Assembly: GCF_032191835.1 (NCBI RefSeq)
Contig: NW_026800309.1
Span: 62,001 to 126,000 of the forward strand
DNA: 64,000 nucleotides
Reading direction: 5' to 3'
Source of the DNA: Heteronotia binoei
Taxonomy: Eukaryota
Shown: in pieces, positions 30,441 to 64,000 of the stretch
Numbering within the stretch: the first letter of the stretch is position 1
Layout: each line of letters opens with the position of its first letter
Translations under genes and position numbers: made by a program
The notes under the pieces: model-generated
What the model was told of the DNA's origin: nothing
Database searches by the model: none
The model's input: only the letters and a program-made list of their open reading frames with translations

Positions 30441-31304
30441 CTAACGGTCTAATGGTCAGGAACACTTAAACGTTGGCTCTGATGGTCATTTGAATACAAA
30501 TGCCTCCTCTCCGCTTTCAGCATCTGCCGTAACAACAATTGGAATGTAACTCAAAGTCAATTTCATATACGCACCTGGCCAAGGAGACCTGGGGTGGGAG
30601 GGTGGGGCAGTGTGCACACAGATTGCAACTCATGCACATAGAAGGGGAACGCAAAGCCCCCCAAAGATTTCCCAAAATAAGATTTGCCCTGGAGCAGTGG
30701 GACAGAGGCAGTTTTCCACACAGACATTGTGTTCCACTTTGCTTCCCAAATTATTTTTCACCAGAATGTCCAGAGTACACTAGTGTGCAGTTGTGAACAT
30801 ATGAAGCTGCCTTATACTGAATCAGACCTTTGGTCCATCTAAGTCAGTATTATCTTCTCAGACTGGCAGCTGCTCTCCAGGGTCCCAAGCTGAGGTTTTT
30901 CACACCTATTTGCCTGGACCCTTTTTTGGAGATGCCAGGGATTGAACCTGGGACCTTCTGCTTCCAAGAAGATGCTCTACCACTGAGCCCACCGTCCCTC
31001 CCCTTTTGTGCACCTTCTCGTTTTCGCCCTGCTCTGCTGTGATTTCTCCTAGGCTTGCTATGGTGTGATCTTTCCAGAAAAGACTGTCGTCAGAGTGGGT
31101 TTGCCCACTATGTGGGTGAGAAAGTGCAGATTTACTGCACAGTGATATGGCTAGAATGTTTTTTTCCCCCTTTAAGAAGCCAGCTAAAGGTCTTCTGACA
31201 GGACAGGGGTGGGGTGGGAGAGAAATGGCAAGCATCTAAATTGATTTATTTAAAATACTGATGCCATGCCTTATCTATCTATTGATGCCATCTCCTTACC
31301 TCAT

Positions 31305-32190: not shown

Positions 32191-33296
32191 CAAATGAAAG
32201 GCAAAGACTCATGGCTGTGAATTACTGGTGAACGCAAAAAAAAAATTGTGCAGGTTCCAGCTTGTGGCCCATTAATCAGAATTTTGGGGCACAGCTTTTG
32301 CTTCCATCAACAGCCTCTGAAGAAGGACGCTGGCTTCCATTGTGAAAAATGAAATGGTTGTGGTGGAACGAACAGGACTTTGTTTGTCCCTGCTAACAGC
32401 GGGACTTTATCGGGTCAAAGATTTTATATACAAAGTTTGTGTGTTTGCAACGCGTGTAGAATTGCTGAGATATCACATTTATAAATGTTGTATATTTGCA
32501 CACAAAAAAATTGAGTTTGCCAGTAATTCACAGCTGTGAGTCTTTGCCTTTTGTTTGTATAATTTTCACACAACTTCCTCGAGTTTGTTGATCTCCTTAT
32601 CTCGTGGCAGCTGCTCGGGCAGGAAGGGATTCTGAGGGAAGCAGAAAAATACTCCTGTGTATGCTCCATCACCCCTGCAAATGCCTCTGGATTTGCAGTG
32701 CTAATAGGTACAAGCAGGGGATTGTCACCATGTGGCTGCAGCCACAGTTAGATCCAGAAGAACTCTAAGAGCCTAAGAGAAGCCACGTTGGATCAGGCCA
32801 TTGCCCCCTCCAGCCCAACAGTGCTGGCAGTGACACTCGCAGGCATGCGAAATAATGCCGTTTCGACTTCAGTGACTGTTTGCAAGTGGATTCAGGCAAC
32901 CGTGTTAGTCTGAAGAAGCAGAACAAAGCAGCAGTACATGGCCCCTTTAAGACTAACAAAAGTTGTATTCACTGTATGAGTTTTTGTGTGCATGTGTGTG
33001 TATCACACAAAGCGTGTGCGTGTACATGTATGCAAGTGGATTTTGCTATTTCACATGGTAAAATCCAGTTGCAAAGTTCATTAAAAGTGGATTGAAAGTG
33101 CATTATGTGGCCATTTCCCCACCAGCCTGCTGCCGCCCTCACACTCCTCTTCTCCGTGGGGCTTTGTCAGATTTCACATTATCTGCCCCGGGGCTGCCAC
33201 TCGCTCCGCCTCTTTCATGCGGCAAACAAGATCCTCTAAAACCAGTTTCTGTTTGCTGCGTGAAAAAGGCGAAGCGAGTTGCAGCCCCAGGGCAGA

Positions 33297-34212
33297 TAGA
33301 ATCATAGAGCTGGAAGGGACCTCCAGGGTCATCTAGTCCAACCCCTGCACAATGCAGGAAACTCACAAACACCTCCCCCTCAATTCACAGGATCCTCATT
33401 GCTCTCAGATGGCCCTCTAGCCTCTGTTGAAAAACCTCCAAGGAAGAAGAGCCCACCACCTCCCGAGGAGGAAGCCTGTTCCAACGAGGAATCACTCTAA
33501 CGGTCAGGAAGTTCTTCCTAATGTTGATCCGGAAACTCTTTTGATTTAATTTCAACCCATTGGTTCTAGTCCTACCTTCTGGGGCCACAGAAAAGAATTC
33601 CACACCATCCTCTATAGGACAGCCCTTCAAGGACTTGAAGATGGTAATCCTATCACCTCTCAGCTGCCTCGTCTCCAGGCTAAACATCCCCAGCTCCTTC
33701 AACCTTTCCTCATAGGATGGTCTCCAGACCCCTCACCGTCTTTGTCGCCCTCCTCTGGACCTGTTCCAGCTTGTCTAGATCCTTCTTAAAATGTGGTGCC
33801 CAAAACTGAACACAAGACTCCAGGTGAGGTCTTACCAGAGCAGAGTAAAGCGATACCATCACATCATGTGATCTGGACACTAGACTTTTGTTGATACAGC
33901 CCAAAATTGCATTTGCCTTTTTAGCCACCGCATCACACTGTTGACTCATGTTCAGCATATGATCCGCTAAGACCCCGAGATCCTTTTCGCACAGACTACT
34001 GCTAAGACAAGTCTCCCCCATTCTGTAACCGTGCATTGGATTTTTCCTACCTAAATGCAGAACTTTACATTTATCCCTGTTAAAATTCATTTTATTGGTT
34101 TTAGCCCAGTTTTCCAGCCTGTCAAGGTCATCCTGTATCCTTTCTGTCTTCTTCTGTGTTCGCAACCCCTCCCAATTTAGTATCATCTGCAAATGTAATA
34201 AGCATTCCCTCT
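33297..34212 (-). mobile_element. CR1 RT 3' fragment
   Basis: FADDTKLGG...IQDDLDRLENWAKTNKMNFNRDKCKVLHLG...LESCVQFWAPHFKKD. Confidence 0.92.
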
Positions 34213-34869
34213 AGTGAGAAATCTAGTGAGATAGTGAGAAATCCGACGGAAGCCCCGTGGAAAAGAGGAGCATGAGAGAGGCATAAGGCTAGTGGGGAAT
34301 CGGTCTGCATCACACAGTGGCCAGAACGCAGGTGCCACCAAAATGTCCACCAGTAAGGCCAGATGAGCTTACTTGCCTGTTGTGGAATTCTGTGGGCTGC
34401 AGCCATAGCAAAGTGGGTCCCACAGTGGGACTGGTCAGGCCTCTCTTGTCGCTCAAAACTGTGTTTTGCACAGCCCATTCAACTTGGAAATCTTCTACTT
34501 GTAATTTTTTTCCCTCTAACCCACTTTGAAATCTGGGCACTTGTTCCAGCAGGGGCTTGGTAAAGATACACAGGAGAAGGGGTGGGTGGAAGAACTGTGG
34601 GGAGTGAAGGCCCTAGGACTGAAGCTGAGGGTTCCGGCAAGATGCTGGCTGAGCCAGGGACACAACTGCTGCTCCTTTGGTTTATGAATTGCTGTGTGGT
34701 TCATGCCGGATGGAAAGGAGCTACAGCCTCCAGGAGCACAATTAAAAAGGTAAAGGGCAAGCACGAGTCACAATTACCTGACAGGAATCGCTACAAAAAG
34801 GAAAGGTGCTGACTTCTTTGTAAATATGCACAGCATTGAGAAGTGCCCCCCAAAAGAGCATCTGATTGT

Positions 34870-35814
34870 CTCTCTCTCTCTCTCTCTCTCTCTCGGCTTG
34901 ACTTCGCGAACGAAGATTTAAGAAGGGTGCAGTAGTCCACGTCTGCTGCAGGCTCGCTGGTGGCTGACAAGACCAATGCGGGACAGGCAGGTCCGGCCAC
35001 AGTGGCTGCAGGGAAAAGTCTGATTTGGGGTCGACTGCAAGTAAGGATGCCCGTTGACCGCGGCTAGCCAACTGGGGTGGGGGAGATGAGCTTTGTTTAG
35101 GCCACCTTTTCTAGGCCCCTCTCCGTGTGGAGCAAGCAGTGCTGTCCCTAGATAAGGCTGCTTGGTCGTTCAGGGTGCTGCCGAAAGATGCTTTCGTCTC
35201 CGGGTTAGCATCAGGCGACCAATATCCTGAACCGCCTACATGCAGGATCGGGACTGCGGCTTCCAGTGGCACCTTCTACCTGCTGTTTCGCCCCTTGCCC
35301 ATCGCTGCAGGACTTGATGCGTTGTGGGTTGTGTGTGTGGATATGCCCTTCAGGCCTGCGCAGAGGAATTTTTTAGGTGAAGCGCAGTGTGCGCGGTACT
35401 GGCTCCACCCTTTCACCTGGGGGTCATCTGCCATGGCCCAGTAAGCCGGGACGCCGGCAGCGAGTCCTCCAGGTGGTAGGTGTTACATTAACGAGCTCTA
35501 TCTGCCCGGGTTTGATGTTAGAGTTTTCCTTCTCTTAGGCTGACGAAGTTGGTGGGCCCAGCCTGCCCATCCGGTTATACCGCCGGACAATTCGGTCGCA
35601 CCATGACGTAGCAAACTCTGTGAAAACGGGGGGGACCAGCGAGAAGGTGTTGCTACGGATGCAGTAATGCAGGAGAGGCCATTGCAGTGACCATCTGCCA
35701 GGCATAGCCAGACAGTGACCACGCGGCGTTCACTACACCGGGAGAGGAGAGGCTATGTATTGCGCATGCACTTTCCCTGGGGGGGGTAGGATTCCCAGAG
35801 GGAGCCCCCCCCCC
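34870..35814 (-). mobile_element. Bipartite non-autonomous RTE derivative (5' UTR fused directly to the 3' end, (GA)n tail)
   Basis: 35030-35814 matches the RTE 5' end at 63073-63858; 34870-35030 matches the RTE 3' end at 4195-4335. Confidence 0.88.
35607..35811 (-). ncRNA. HDV-like ribozyme at the RTE 5' end
   Basis: P1 G7/C7; P2 CGTAGCAAC/GTTTGCTACG; P3 ACC/GGT; L3 TTCTCGCT; J4/2 CAGA; long J1/2. Confidence 0.72.
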
Positions 35815-37615
35815 AAAGGGTGATTAACACGTGGAATTCACTGCCACAGAAGGTGGTGGCGGCTACAAGCATAGACAGCTTCAAGGGGGGATTGGATCAA
35901 CATGGAGCAGAGGTCCATCAGTGGCTATTAGCCACAGTGTATTGTTAGAACACTGTCTGGGGTAGTGATGCTCTGTATTCTTGGTACTTGGGAGTAGGGC
36001 ACAGTGGGAGGGGAGGCTTCTAGTGTCCTGGCCCCCAGTGATGAACCTCCTGATGGCCCCTGGTTTCTTGGCCCCTGTGTGACAAAGAGTGTTGGACTGG
36101 AGGGGCCAATGGCCTGATCCAACAGGGCTTCTCTCATGTTCTTATGCGACCCAGAGTGTTGGACTGGAGGGGCCACTGGCCTGATCCAACAGGGCTTTCT
36201 CTTATGTTCTTATGTGACACAGAGTGTTGGACTGGATGTGCCATAGGCCTGATCCAACAGGGCTTCTCATATGTTCTTATGTGACACAGAGTGTTGGACT
36301 GGATGGGCCCACTGGCCTGATCTAACAGGGCTTCTCTTATGTTCTTATGTGACACAGAGTGTTGGACTGGATGTGCCATAGGCCTGATCCAACAGGGCTT
36401 CTCATATGTTCTTATGTGACACAGAGTGTTGACTGGATGGGCCACTGGCCTGATCCAACAGGGCTTCTCTTATGTTCTTATGTGACACAGAGTGTTGGAC
36501 TGGAGGGGCCATTGGCCTGATCCAACATGGCTTCTCTTATGTTCTAATGTGACAACGAGTGTTGGACTGGATGGGCCAGTGGCCTGATCCAACAGGGCTT
36601 CTCTTATGTTCTTATGTGACACAGAGTGTTGGACTGGAGGGGGCACTGGCCTGATCCAACAGGGCTTCTCTTATGTTCTAATGTGACGAGTGTTGGACTG
36701 GAGGGGCCAGTGGCCTGATCCAACAGGGCTTCTCTTATGTTCTTATGCGACACAGAGTGTTGGACTGGATGGGCCACTGGCCTGATCTAACAGGGCTTCT
36801 CTTATGTTCTTATGTGACACAGAGTGTTGGACTGGATGTGCCATAGGCCTGATCCAACAGGGCTTCTCTTATGTTCTTATGTGACACAGAGTGTTGGACT
36901 GGATGTGCCATAGGCCTGATCCAACAGGGCTTCTCTTATGTTCTTATGTGACACAGAGTGTTGGACTGGAGGGGCCATTGGCCTGATCCAACATGGGTTC
37001 TCTTATGTTCTATTGTGACAACGAATGTTGGACTGGATGGGCCAGTGGCCTGATCCAACAAGGCTTCTCTTATGTTCTTATGTGACACAGAGTGTTGGAC
37101 TGGAGGGGCCACTGGCCTGATCCAACAGGGCTTCTCTTATGTTCTACTGTGACAACGAGTGTTGGACTGGAGGGGCCAGTGGCCTGATCCAACAGGGCTT
37201 CTCATATGTTCGTATGTGACACAGAGTGTTGGACTGGATGTGCCATAGGCCTGGTCCAACAGGGCTTCTCTTATGTTCTTACGTGACACAGAGTGTTGGA
37301 TTGGAGGGGCCATTGGCCTGATCCAACATGGCTTCTCTTATGTTCTAATGTGACAACGAGAGTTGGACTGGAGGGGCCAGTGGCCTGATCCAACAGGGCT
37401 TCTCTTATGTTCTTATGTGACACAGAGTGTTGGACTGGAGGGGCCACTGGCCTGATCCAACAGGGCTTCTCTTATGTTCTTATGTGAAACAGAGTGTTGA
37501 CTGGAGGGGCCACTGGCCTGATCCAACAGGGCTTCTCTTATGTTCTTATGTGACACAGAGTGTTGGACTGGAGGGGCCACTGGCCTGATCCAACAGGCTT
37601 CTCTTATGTTCTTAT
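35812..37615 (+). repeat. CR1 3' end followed by ~23 tandem 67-bp terminal units
   Basis: Direct inspection; periodic TGACAACGAG variant units. Confidence 0.93.
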
Positions 37616-62808: not shown

Positions 62809-63072
62809 CCTTATTGAGTTTTCCCTCCCAAATTGCTAGAGCATCTGGGAAGACTGTAGAGTTTTCCTGGAAATGCCTAGATCGGCCGGTGCACAACGTT
62901 TCCAGTGCGATGACATCATCGCACCAACGACACTGGTGGGTTGGGAACCTCCAGGGCGAGAGAATTCCCACCCAGTCTGGGGGCTTGGCAGCCTTACCAA
63001 AAGCTTATACCCAGAACAAAACTTTGTTGGTCTTAAAGGGCCCTTAGTAATGATGAAATGGGGTGGGGGGGT

Positions 63073-64000
63073 GGGGGGGGGGGTGGGCTCCCTCTGGGAA
63101 TCCTACCTCCCAGGGAAAGTGCATGCGCAATACATAGCCTCTCCTCTCCCGGTGTAGTGAACGCCGCGTGGTCACTGTCTGGCTATGCCTGGCAGATGGT
63201 CACTGCAATGGCCTCTCCTGCATTACTGCATCCGTAGCAACACCTTCTCGCTGGTCCCCCCCGTTTTCACAGAGTTTGCTACGTCATGGTGCGACCGAAT
63301 TGTCCGGCGGTATAACCGGATGGGCAGGCTGGGCCCACCAACTTCGTCAGCCTAAGAGAAGGAAAACTCTAACATCAAACCCGGGCAGATAGAGCTCGTT
63401 AATGTAACACCTACCACCTGGAGGACTCACTGCCGGCGTCCCGGCTTACTGGGCCATGGCAGATGACCCCCAGGTGAAAGGGTGGAGCCAGTACCGCGCA
63501 CACTGCGCTTCACCTAAAAAATTCCTCTGCGCAGGCCTGAAGGGCATATCCACACACACAACCCACAACGCATCAAGTCCTGCAGCGATAGGCAAGGGGC
63601 GAAACGGCAGGTGGAAGGTGCCACTGGAAGCCGCAGTCCCGATCCTGCATGTAGGCGGTTTAGGATATTGGTCGCCTGATGCTAACCCGGAGACGAAAGC
63701 ATCTTTCGGCAGCACCCTGAACGACCAAGCCGCCTTATCTAGGGACAGCACTGCTTGCTCCACACGGAGAGGGGCCTAGAAAAGGTGGCCTAAACAAAGC
63801 TCGTCTCCCCCACCCCAGTTGGCTAGCCGCGGTCAACGGGCATCCTTACTTGCGGTCGAAAAATAACAACAAAGAAAAGGCATGCACCTGCCTCACAAAG
63901 TGTGCAAAGACTAAAGCTTGCGTGTTGGAACATCAGAACCATGCTTGACACAGTAGGCAGTGGTCGCCCTGAATGACGCTCTGCTCTAGTTGCCCACGAA
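63073..64000 (+). mobile_element. 5' end of an RTE LINE (UTR plus start of AP endonuclease), continues past the window
   Basis: LKLACWNIRTMLDTVGSGRPE*RSALVAHE (RTE APE N-terminus; TGA at 63974 is probably CpG decay). Confidence 0.9.
63077..63283 (+). ncRNA. HDV-like ribozyme, second copy
   Basis: P2 63233-63241/63274-63283, P3 ACC/GGT, L3 TTCTCGCT 63245-63252, C7 63256-63262, J4/2 CAGA 63270-63273. Confidence 0.68.

Follow-up and report, generated by a model that had tools for sequence, protein, structure and literature searches.

Two RTE copies and the fold at their 5' ends

A window of 64,000 nt from the gecko Heteronotia binoei (RefSeq assembly GCF_032191835.1, contig NW_026800309.1, positions 62,001 to 126,000 of the forward strand) contains two copies, A and B, of a retrotransposon of the RTE type; the 5' end of copy A had been predicted from the sequence to form a self-cleaving ribozyme related to that of hepatitis delta virus (HDV). 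All positions given here refer to this window. Every strand of an HDV-type fold is found, in the HDV order, at 35814-35607 on the minus strand at the head of copy A, and again at 63060-63283 on the plus strand at the head of copy B. A 22-mer of the core occurs twice in the window, at 35627-35648 (minus) and 63242-63263 (plus), with none expected from 100 shuffles.

Read along the minus strand, the fold of copy A begins with a run of ten G (35805-35814), which forms the 5' boundary of the element and of which any seven can pair as P1 with P1', CCCCCCC (35628-35634). Between these two strands lie the J1/2 insert of 147 nt (35658-35804), the 5' strand of P2, CGTAGCAAC (35649-35657), the 5' strand of P3, ACC (35646-35648), the loop L3, TTCTCGCT (35638-35645), and the 3' strand of P3, GGT (35635-35637). 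P1' is followed by a single G (35627) and a 6-nt linker, TTTTCA (35621-35626; together 35621-35627), which occupies the place of P4 in related elements. J4/2, CAGA (35617-35620), has the form C-N-R-A and adjoins the 3' strand of P2, GTTTGCTACG (35607-35616), with C 35620 as the predicted catalytic cytosine. P2 comprises 9 bp, with T 35613 bulged after the third pair. The original prediction had named the same elements (P1, J1/2, P2, P3, L3, P3', P1', G, TTTTCA, CAGA and P2'), and all of them were recovered on this strand.

P1 is a G7/C7 helix, all of it Watson-Crick and with G as its first base, as is characteristic of the HDV-like class; its register inside the G-run is ambiguous. The 3-bp P3, ACC/GGT, closes an L3 that reads UUCUCGCU in the RNA and has the U1, C3 and G6 typical of the class, at positions that are invariant in all the relatives listed below. 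The L3 of genomic HDV is UCCUCGCU, one base away from that of the gecko. Because L3 begins with UUC and only a single G follows P1', just one P1.1 pair is possible, between C 35643 of L3 and G 35627, where P4-bearing relatives have two. The P4 helix is absent, and nothing but GUUUUCA stands between P1' and J4/2. A CPEB3-like fold with a single P1.1 pair, a minimal P4, a long J1/2 and one bulge in P2 had been proposed, and this description is borne out by the one pair, the missing P4, the 147 nt of J1/2 and the bulged T. Two structures are predicted within the J1/2 insert: a small hairpin formed by CUGGGA/UCCCAG, and a long stem-loop, with GGUGUAGUGA/UUACUGCAUC as its closing helix, that ends beside P2. 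The size of the insert is comparable to that in the related loci L065 and L041, where P1 and P1' are 177-181 nt apart, and the gecko element and these two loci have in common a GCCTCTC block immediately 5' of P2.

In copy B, the plus strand carries P2 at 63233-41, P3 at 63242-44, L3 at 63245-52, P3' at 63253-55, P1' at 63256-62, the single G at 63263, J4/2 at 63270-73 and P2' at 63274-83. The G-rich head of this copy (63060-63087) reads G4 T G7 T G11 T G3. The remainder of copy B (63284-64000, plus) consists of the 5' untranslated region (UTR), open reading frame (ORF) 1 of 107 aa (63456-63776, plus) and the endonuclease start of ORF2, cut off by the end of the window. The sequence reads on into ...LKLACWNIRTMLD...RSALVAHE, the start of an apurinic/apyrimidinic (AP) endonuclease domain. 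An in-frame TGA (63974-63976, plus) stands in this endonuclease start where relatives have an Arg codon, so that copy B is not coding-intact.

Copy A (34871-35814, minus) consists of the ribozyme head, the 5' UTR, a stop-interrupted ORF1, the end of ORF2, the 3' UTR and a (GA)n tail. At a junction near 35031/35030 the ORF1 region is joined to the last ~37 codons of ORF2, and the end of the reading frame, ...PCSHCGRTCLSRIGLVSHQRAC..., is the ORF2 C-terminus and matches the ORF2 end of the relative L001; a short 3' UTR and (GA)n follow. By its sequence, copy A is an internally deleted, non-autonomous RTE derivative, and its bipartite structure may reflect either a one-off deletion or a non-autonomous family. 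No clean target-site duplication was seen for this copy in 34825-34872 and 35815-35830. The sequence directly 3' of its (GA)n tail, AATCAGATGCTCTTTTGGGGGG, imperfectly resembles the upstream flank, AATCACCCTTTGGG, and after another ~45 nt the CR1-like repeat that the element interrupts continues.

The two copies are ~99% identical over ~800 nt and differ in their flanks, and their similarity begins in the G-rich head; the family is young. From element position ~363 onwards, the DNA is 79-80% identical to the loci L001, L002, L006, L007 and L014 from public assemblies and metagenomes, and the ORFs of these relatives carry Exo_endo_phos and RVT_1. The AP-endonuclease start of copy B, the ORF2 C-terminus and (GA)n tail of copy A, and the identity to relatives with these two domains identify the host element as an RTE, as had been proposed.

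Heads of related elements

A word search with ORF1 returned two related proteins, and a HMMER search with the endonuclease start of L001 returned 2740, from which an alignment of 24 led to 80 metagenome loci (L numbers denote loci). In many of the relatives an HDV-like fold lies 690-830 nt upstream of the endonuclease start; the gecko fold lies ~700 nt upstream. One group (L032, L002, L024, L033, L069, L021) has P3 GGC/GCC and a P1' of the form A-Y-A-Y-CCC, a second (L079-81, L061, L020) has P3 GCC/GGC and P1' ACACCAT, and a third (L065, L041), with the P1-P1' spacing noted above, has P3 ACC/GGT or GCC/GGT, a C-rich P1' and a P4 of ~11 bp. Where the gecko head has GUUUUCA, relatives with P4 carry GG and a P4 of 5-11 bp, as L065, L032 and L079 illustrate at the place of the TTTTCA linker. 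J4/2 is CGGA, CAAA, CTAA or CTGA in the relatives, always C-N-R-A directly 5' of P2', and the bulge in the 3' strand of P2, after the second or third pair, recurs in the gecko, L032, L065, L024 and L033. The loci L001, L002, L003, L004, L085 and L086 are 5'-truncated or have other heads, and in heads of the L001 type, which begin GTCAGGT..., neither the descriptor nor covariance model R1 (both described below) found an HDV-like fold and Rfam gave no known ribozyme.

Two further observations concern these heads. In L024 (2230-2255), L033 (2049-2077), L069 (206-232) and L021 (2308-2407) L3 carries an extra hairpin of ~20 nt, located after the conserved G and before the 3' strand of P3; its stem covaries (GTTGT/ACAGC, CTGTT/AACAG, CTGT/ACAG), and the fold is otherwise canonical. 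To our knowledge, there is no precedent for an HDV-like fold with a hairpin inserted in L3. A P4-bearing HDV-like RTE head is also present at L088:8664-8742 (GCA_028583405.1, CM053252.1; 56.8 bits with model R2, see below), within an annotated gene-model range of a chromosome-scale assembly, which places the family in assembled animal genomes.

As MAFFT failed to align the cores across types, a structure-aware alignment was made with covariance models. Model R1, built from five P4-bearing relatives, retrieved 13 further sites with E values from 1e-12 to 0.03, all at the same position of the RTE. On the R1 alignment, which was fitted to the structure, 17 of the 20 nested pairs show compensatory changes, and 84% of cells are paired, compared with 62% after shuffling; none of 500 shuffles reached the observed values, and sliding the partners by one to three columns collapsed every measure of covariation. 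The pseudoknotted P1 covaries too among the gecko and its relatives, where P1/P1' is GGGGGGG/CCCCCCC, GGGGTAT/ATACCCC, GGGGTGT/ACACCCC, GTGGTGT/ACACCAT, GGGGAG/CTCCCT or GGGGTGC/GCACCCT.

P4 is also missing in two other lineages, L029/L042/L077 (G UUACUUA CGGA) and L060 (G UUCUCG CAGA). Like the gecko, both carry just one G behind P1', and in all three P4-less lineages position 2 of L3 is U or A and not C, which leaves one P1.1 pair. The P2 strands of the three lineages are wholly different in sequence and yet remain complementary, and the ACC/GGT of P3 in the gecko corresponds to GCC/GGC in the two other lineages; this retention of pairing in P2 and P3 across diverged sequences argues that the fold was maintained after P4 was lost.

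The relatives also allow the start of the element to be located. In L021, L024, L032, L033 and L069, as well as between L041 and L065 and between L029 and L042, homology begins exactly at G1 of P1 and the flanks are unrelated, which is the pattern expected if the RNA template begins at the cleavage site of a ribozyme. The P4-less L029/L042 lineage is included in this. The folds at the same position in the relatives, their compensatory changes and these 5' ends at G1 of P1 make a true ribozyme origin of the gecko head very likely.

Two models built without the gecko sequences recover the gecko heads. With R2, made from 18 relatives, the two gecko sites rank at the top (12.6 bits, E 0.43) and align from P2 to P2' in the register expected, the third match scoring 12.4 bits; with R3, made from four P4-less relatives, they again rank at the top (16.0 bits, E 0.056, the latter rough), the next match scoring 10.4 bits. 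P1 contributes no score in R1, R2 or R3, and removal of P4 is costly in R1 and R2. The top rank together with the correct register is suggestive, short of significance.

Weighing the ribozyme reading

From these comparisons we consider it likely that the head functions as a minimal HDV-like ribozyme and frees the RTE RNA by a cut at its first base. The element would be transcribed within a longer read-through transcript, in which the first ~208 nt of the RTE RNA would form a P4-less HDV-like double pseudoknot with the ~147-nt J1/2 insert. This fold would cleave immediately before the first G that pairs in P1, with C 35620 of CAGA as the catalytic base; the released RNA would start at the first base of the element and retain the whole ribozyme, and full-length new copies would thus begin with the G-run and inherit the ribozyme. 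Two points are our inference: that the gecko head cleaves despite lacking P4, and that the 5' end is set by this cleavage and not by a promoter.

Several results weigh against this reading. With no P4 and with P1.1 cut to one pair, the core is less stabilised, and P1 pairs a G-run with a C-run, a helix that arises easily by chance and has an ambiguous register. No HDV-type Rfam match was obtained at the site, either in a scan of 30-40 kb or with 301 nt alone and E values up to 10; model R1 missed it with filters on or off, and the scores of R2 and R3 are not significant alone. When copy A is folded without constraints, the minimum-energy structure has the G-run paired with a nearby C8 run (35783-35776) and not with P1', and the fold energy of the whole region is unremarkable (z = -0.7). 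The G-rich head differs in length between the copies (10 nt in A, 28 nt with three T in B), and the exact 5' base is not fixed. Covariation, which the original prediction had put forward as a check, is present across the RTE-family heads in P1-P4 and absent within the gecko lineage, as its two copies are nearly identical.

The same prediction had the fold start exactly at the 5' boundary of the element. This stands insofar as the homology of copies A and B starts in the G-run; the exact first base cannot be fixed, because the CR1-like repeat flanking copy A runs through ...CCCTTTGGG and as many as three of the ten G could be flanking sequence. Seven G would then remain, the length of P1, which is consistent with a ribozyme, short of proof. 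The G-run might instead lie outside the transcript, as untemplated or slipped bases acquired at integration, in which case the RNA would have no P1. We regard this as very unlikely. The difference between the heads (G10 against G4 T G7 T G11 T G3) and the G assignable to the flank would fit it; the relatives, however, have non-homopolymer P1 strands (GGGGTAT, GGGGTGT, GTGGTGT, GGGGTGC) that are exactly complementary to P1' and with which the shared sequence starts, so P1 is templated in the family, and at least seven G beside CTCCC are common to both gecko copies if the one interrupting T of copy B is allowed.

How readily such a fold could arise by chance was assessed with descriptors. A strict descriptor specified L3 as U-Y-C-N-N-G of 7-8 nt, a P3 of 3 bp, all Watson-Crick, a P1 of 7 bp starting with G, a G after P1', C-N-R-A, and a P2 of at least 8 bp adjoining P3. 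In the window it matched the two RTE heads only, with no match in 60 dinucleotide shuffles of the window (~7.7 Mb, both strands), and in 595 kb of related loci it gave four matches, all upstream of RTE ORFs. Since this descriptor was partly shaped after the site was seen, the comparative evidence weighs more. Loose descriptors gave about one match per 30 kb in the window, which makes the helix order on its own weak evidence. The first loose descriptors either missed the site, owing to the P2 bulge, or returned about one false match per 30 kb, including a spurious alternative fold within the same element, and a descriptor allowing long L3 inserts and otherwise unrestricted gave many false matches.

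It is very unlikely that the site is a chance resemblance, in which a G-run, a C-run and short complements fell into the HDV order within a GC-rich 5' UTR. The low complexity of P1, the frequency of loose matches and the unremarkable energy of the nested fold are what chance would produce; it would not account for the empty shuffles under the strict descriptor, for a top rank in the right register with two models from the RTE heads of other organisms, for a distance to the endonuclease start like that in the relatives, or for the position of the P2 bulge and the identities of L3 and J4/2, which the relatives have in common.

The curated Rfam models RF00094, RF00622, RF02682, RF01787 and RF01788 gave no match at the gecko site, and a long J1/2 and an absent P4 fit such models badly. 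Matches obtained with the 301 nt fell on the G-run/C8 hairpin, were miRNA-like and were discarded as spurious. A compact relative (L046:87-160) aligns to the full RF00094 model in the same register, with 36.4 bits (E 0.08), below the gathering score of 50. As to energies, for an RNA beginning at G1 a pseudoknotted fold with P1 and P3 forced and the P2 duplex added reaches about -75.7 kcal/mol and the best nested fold -70.8. The former value is a rough sum that includes no penalty for pseudoknots; in these calculations the HDV fold is energetically competitive. Pairing of the G-run with the C8 run is a possible kinetic trap for the RNA; in copy B the C8 run is interrupted.

The main alternative is a relic: the head may descend from a functional HDV-like ribozyme of an ancestral RTE and be inactive or very slow after losing P4 and one P1.1 pair. 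An internal promoter or some other processing would then define where the element starts, and the fold may be kept for protein binding or translation initiation, for example. Besides those losses, the weak scores with the relatives' models, the absence of an Rfam match and the hairpin that competes with P1 in copy A speak for such a relic, and functions like that of an internal ribosome entry site, as well as protein binding, have been discussed for the 5' folds of R2 (PMC6765202). We nevertheless think it rather unlikely, since the core is intact (U1, C3 and G6 of L3, C-N-R-A, a 7-bp P1 and a 9-bp P2), heads without P4 are present in three or more diverged lineages that differ by compensatory changes in P2 and P3, the L029/L042 lineage, which has no P4, likewise has its 5' ends at P1, and HDV-like ribozymes that lack P4 have already been described (PMC10879173).

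Elsewhere in the window, a tRNA-like sequence at 30927-30997 (minus) exceeds the Rfam gathering score of 29 with 35.6 bits and could represent either a tRNA gene or the tRNA-derived head of a short interspersed nuclear element. On both strands, a near-perfect palindrome of ~130 nt (33175-33303) gives sub-threshold matches to unrelated miRNA precursor models; it is probably a repeat that forms a hairpin. A BLAST search of the element against a phage collection found nothing, as expected.

Known ribozymes and the RTE family

HDV-like ribozymes have been placed at the 5' ends of R2, RTE, baggins and L1Tc (in a passage of PMC6765202 citing Ruminski 2011 and Eickbush & Eickbush 2010), and the evolution of the R2 ribozymes has been treated separately (PMC3774820); variants of twister are also mentioned at RTE 5' ends (PMC7761336). 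The gecko head resembles the ribozymes at the 5' ends of long interspersed nuclear elements (LINEs) in having a nested double pseudoknot at the extreme 5' end, with the predicted cut at the first base of the element, and in being borne by an RTE that shows no obvious promoter of its own, for which release from read-through transcripts is the presumed role. It differs from them in its squamate host, the missing P4 and a plain G7/C7 P1, and its cleavage is a prediction.

P4-less HDV-like ribozymes have been described (PMC10879173, citing Riccitelli 2014); to date the minimal forms come from metagenomes and phages, and their roles in eukaryotes are uncertain. Of these, drz-Mtgn and the theta ribozymes of gut phages are like the gecko head in lacking P4 and in having a short linker between P1.1 and J4/2; they are compact, with a short J1/2, and lie beside tRNAs in metagenomes or phages, whereas the gecko fold has a J1/2 of 147 nt and heads a eukaryotic LINE. 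Structured J1/2 domains can accelerate the cleavage of large HDV-like ribozymes (PMC4908430), and the Anopheles drz-Agam-2 family, with P1.2 in J1/2, shares with the gecko a long, foldable insert between P1 and P2 whose helix ends beside P2 (PMC4908430). Unlike in this family, P1 of the gecko fold is separated from the large stem by ~65 nt and a small hairpin; the 'pinch' geometry is accordingly not evident, and P4 is missing as well. Unlike L046:87-160, which aligns with the HDV_ribozyme model in the same register, the gecko site gives no match to RF00094.

The likeness to mammalian CPEB3 lies in L3, which there has the form UUC-N-CG-U and likewise allows one possible P1.1 pair. CPEB3 is a single-copy intronic ribozyme with P4, a short J1/2 and no transposon, and the gecko head differs in each of these respects. 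Each of three features, an HDV-like ribozyme on an RTE, a core without P4 and a long insert in J1/2, has been described before; no description of an HDV-like ribozyme in squamate RTEs was found in the literature searched, which did not span all key surveys.

RTEs that are ~80% identical in the DNA of ORF1 and the ORF2 start bear three unrelated 5' heads (63060-63420 compared with L001:9510-9780, L014:2190-2480 and L002:22-330): the P4-less HDV-like head of the gecko, the P4-bearing HDV-like head of L002, and the 'GTCAGGT...' head of L001, L004, L006, L011 and L014, which contains CUGAUGAG and no HDV-like motif. Such unrelated heads on closely related ORFs suggest head swapping. The part of copy B from 63420 to 64000 is 79-80% identical in DNA to the non-squamate copies L001, L003 (GCA_947568905.1), L006, L007 and L014, apparently from aquatic animals, which hints at horizontal transfer. 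Horizontal transfer is known for RTE/BovB elements. We tentatively suggest, as a possibility that is still doubtful, that P4-less HDV-like ribozymes might be a natural, exchangeable 5' head module of RTEs, swapped among lineages, perhaps carried horizontally between aquatic invertebrates and a squamate and now driving a very young, active family.

Vertebrate genomes have so far yielded few documented self-cleaving ribozymes. For annotators, the head would provide a means of recognising 5'-complete copies of the gecko RTE family. More broadly, a young, multi-copy reptile LINE headed by a ribozyme would be a natural system in which to study how processing sets the 5' ends of LINEs, whether cleavage persists in a core that lacks P4, has a single P1.1 pair and carries a large J1/2, and how heads pass between RTE lineages.

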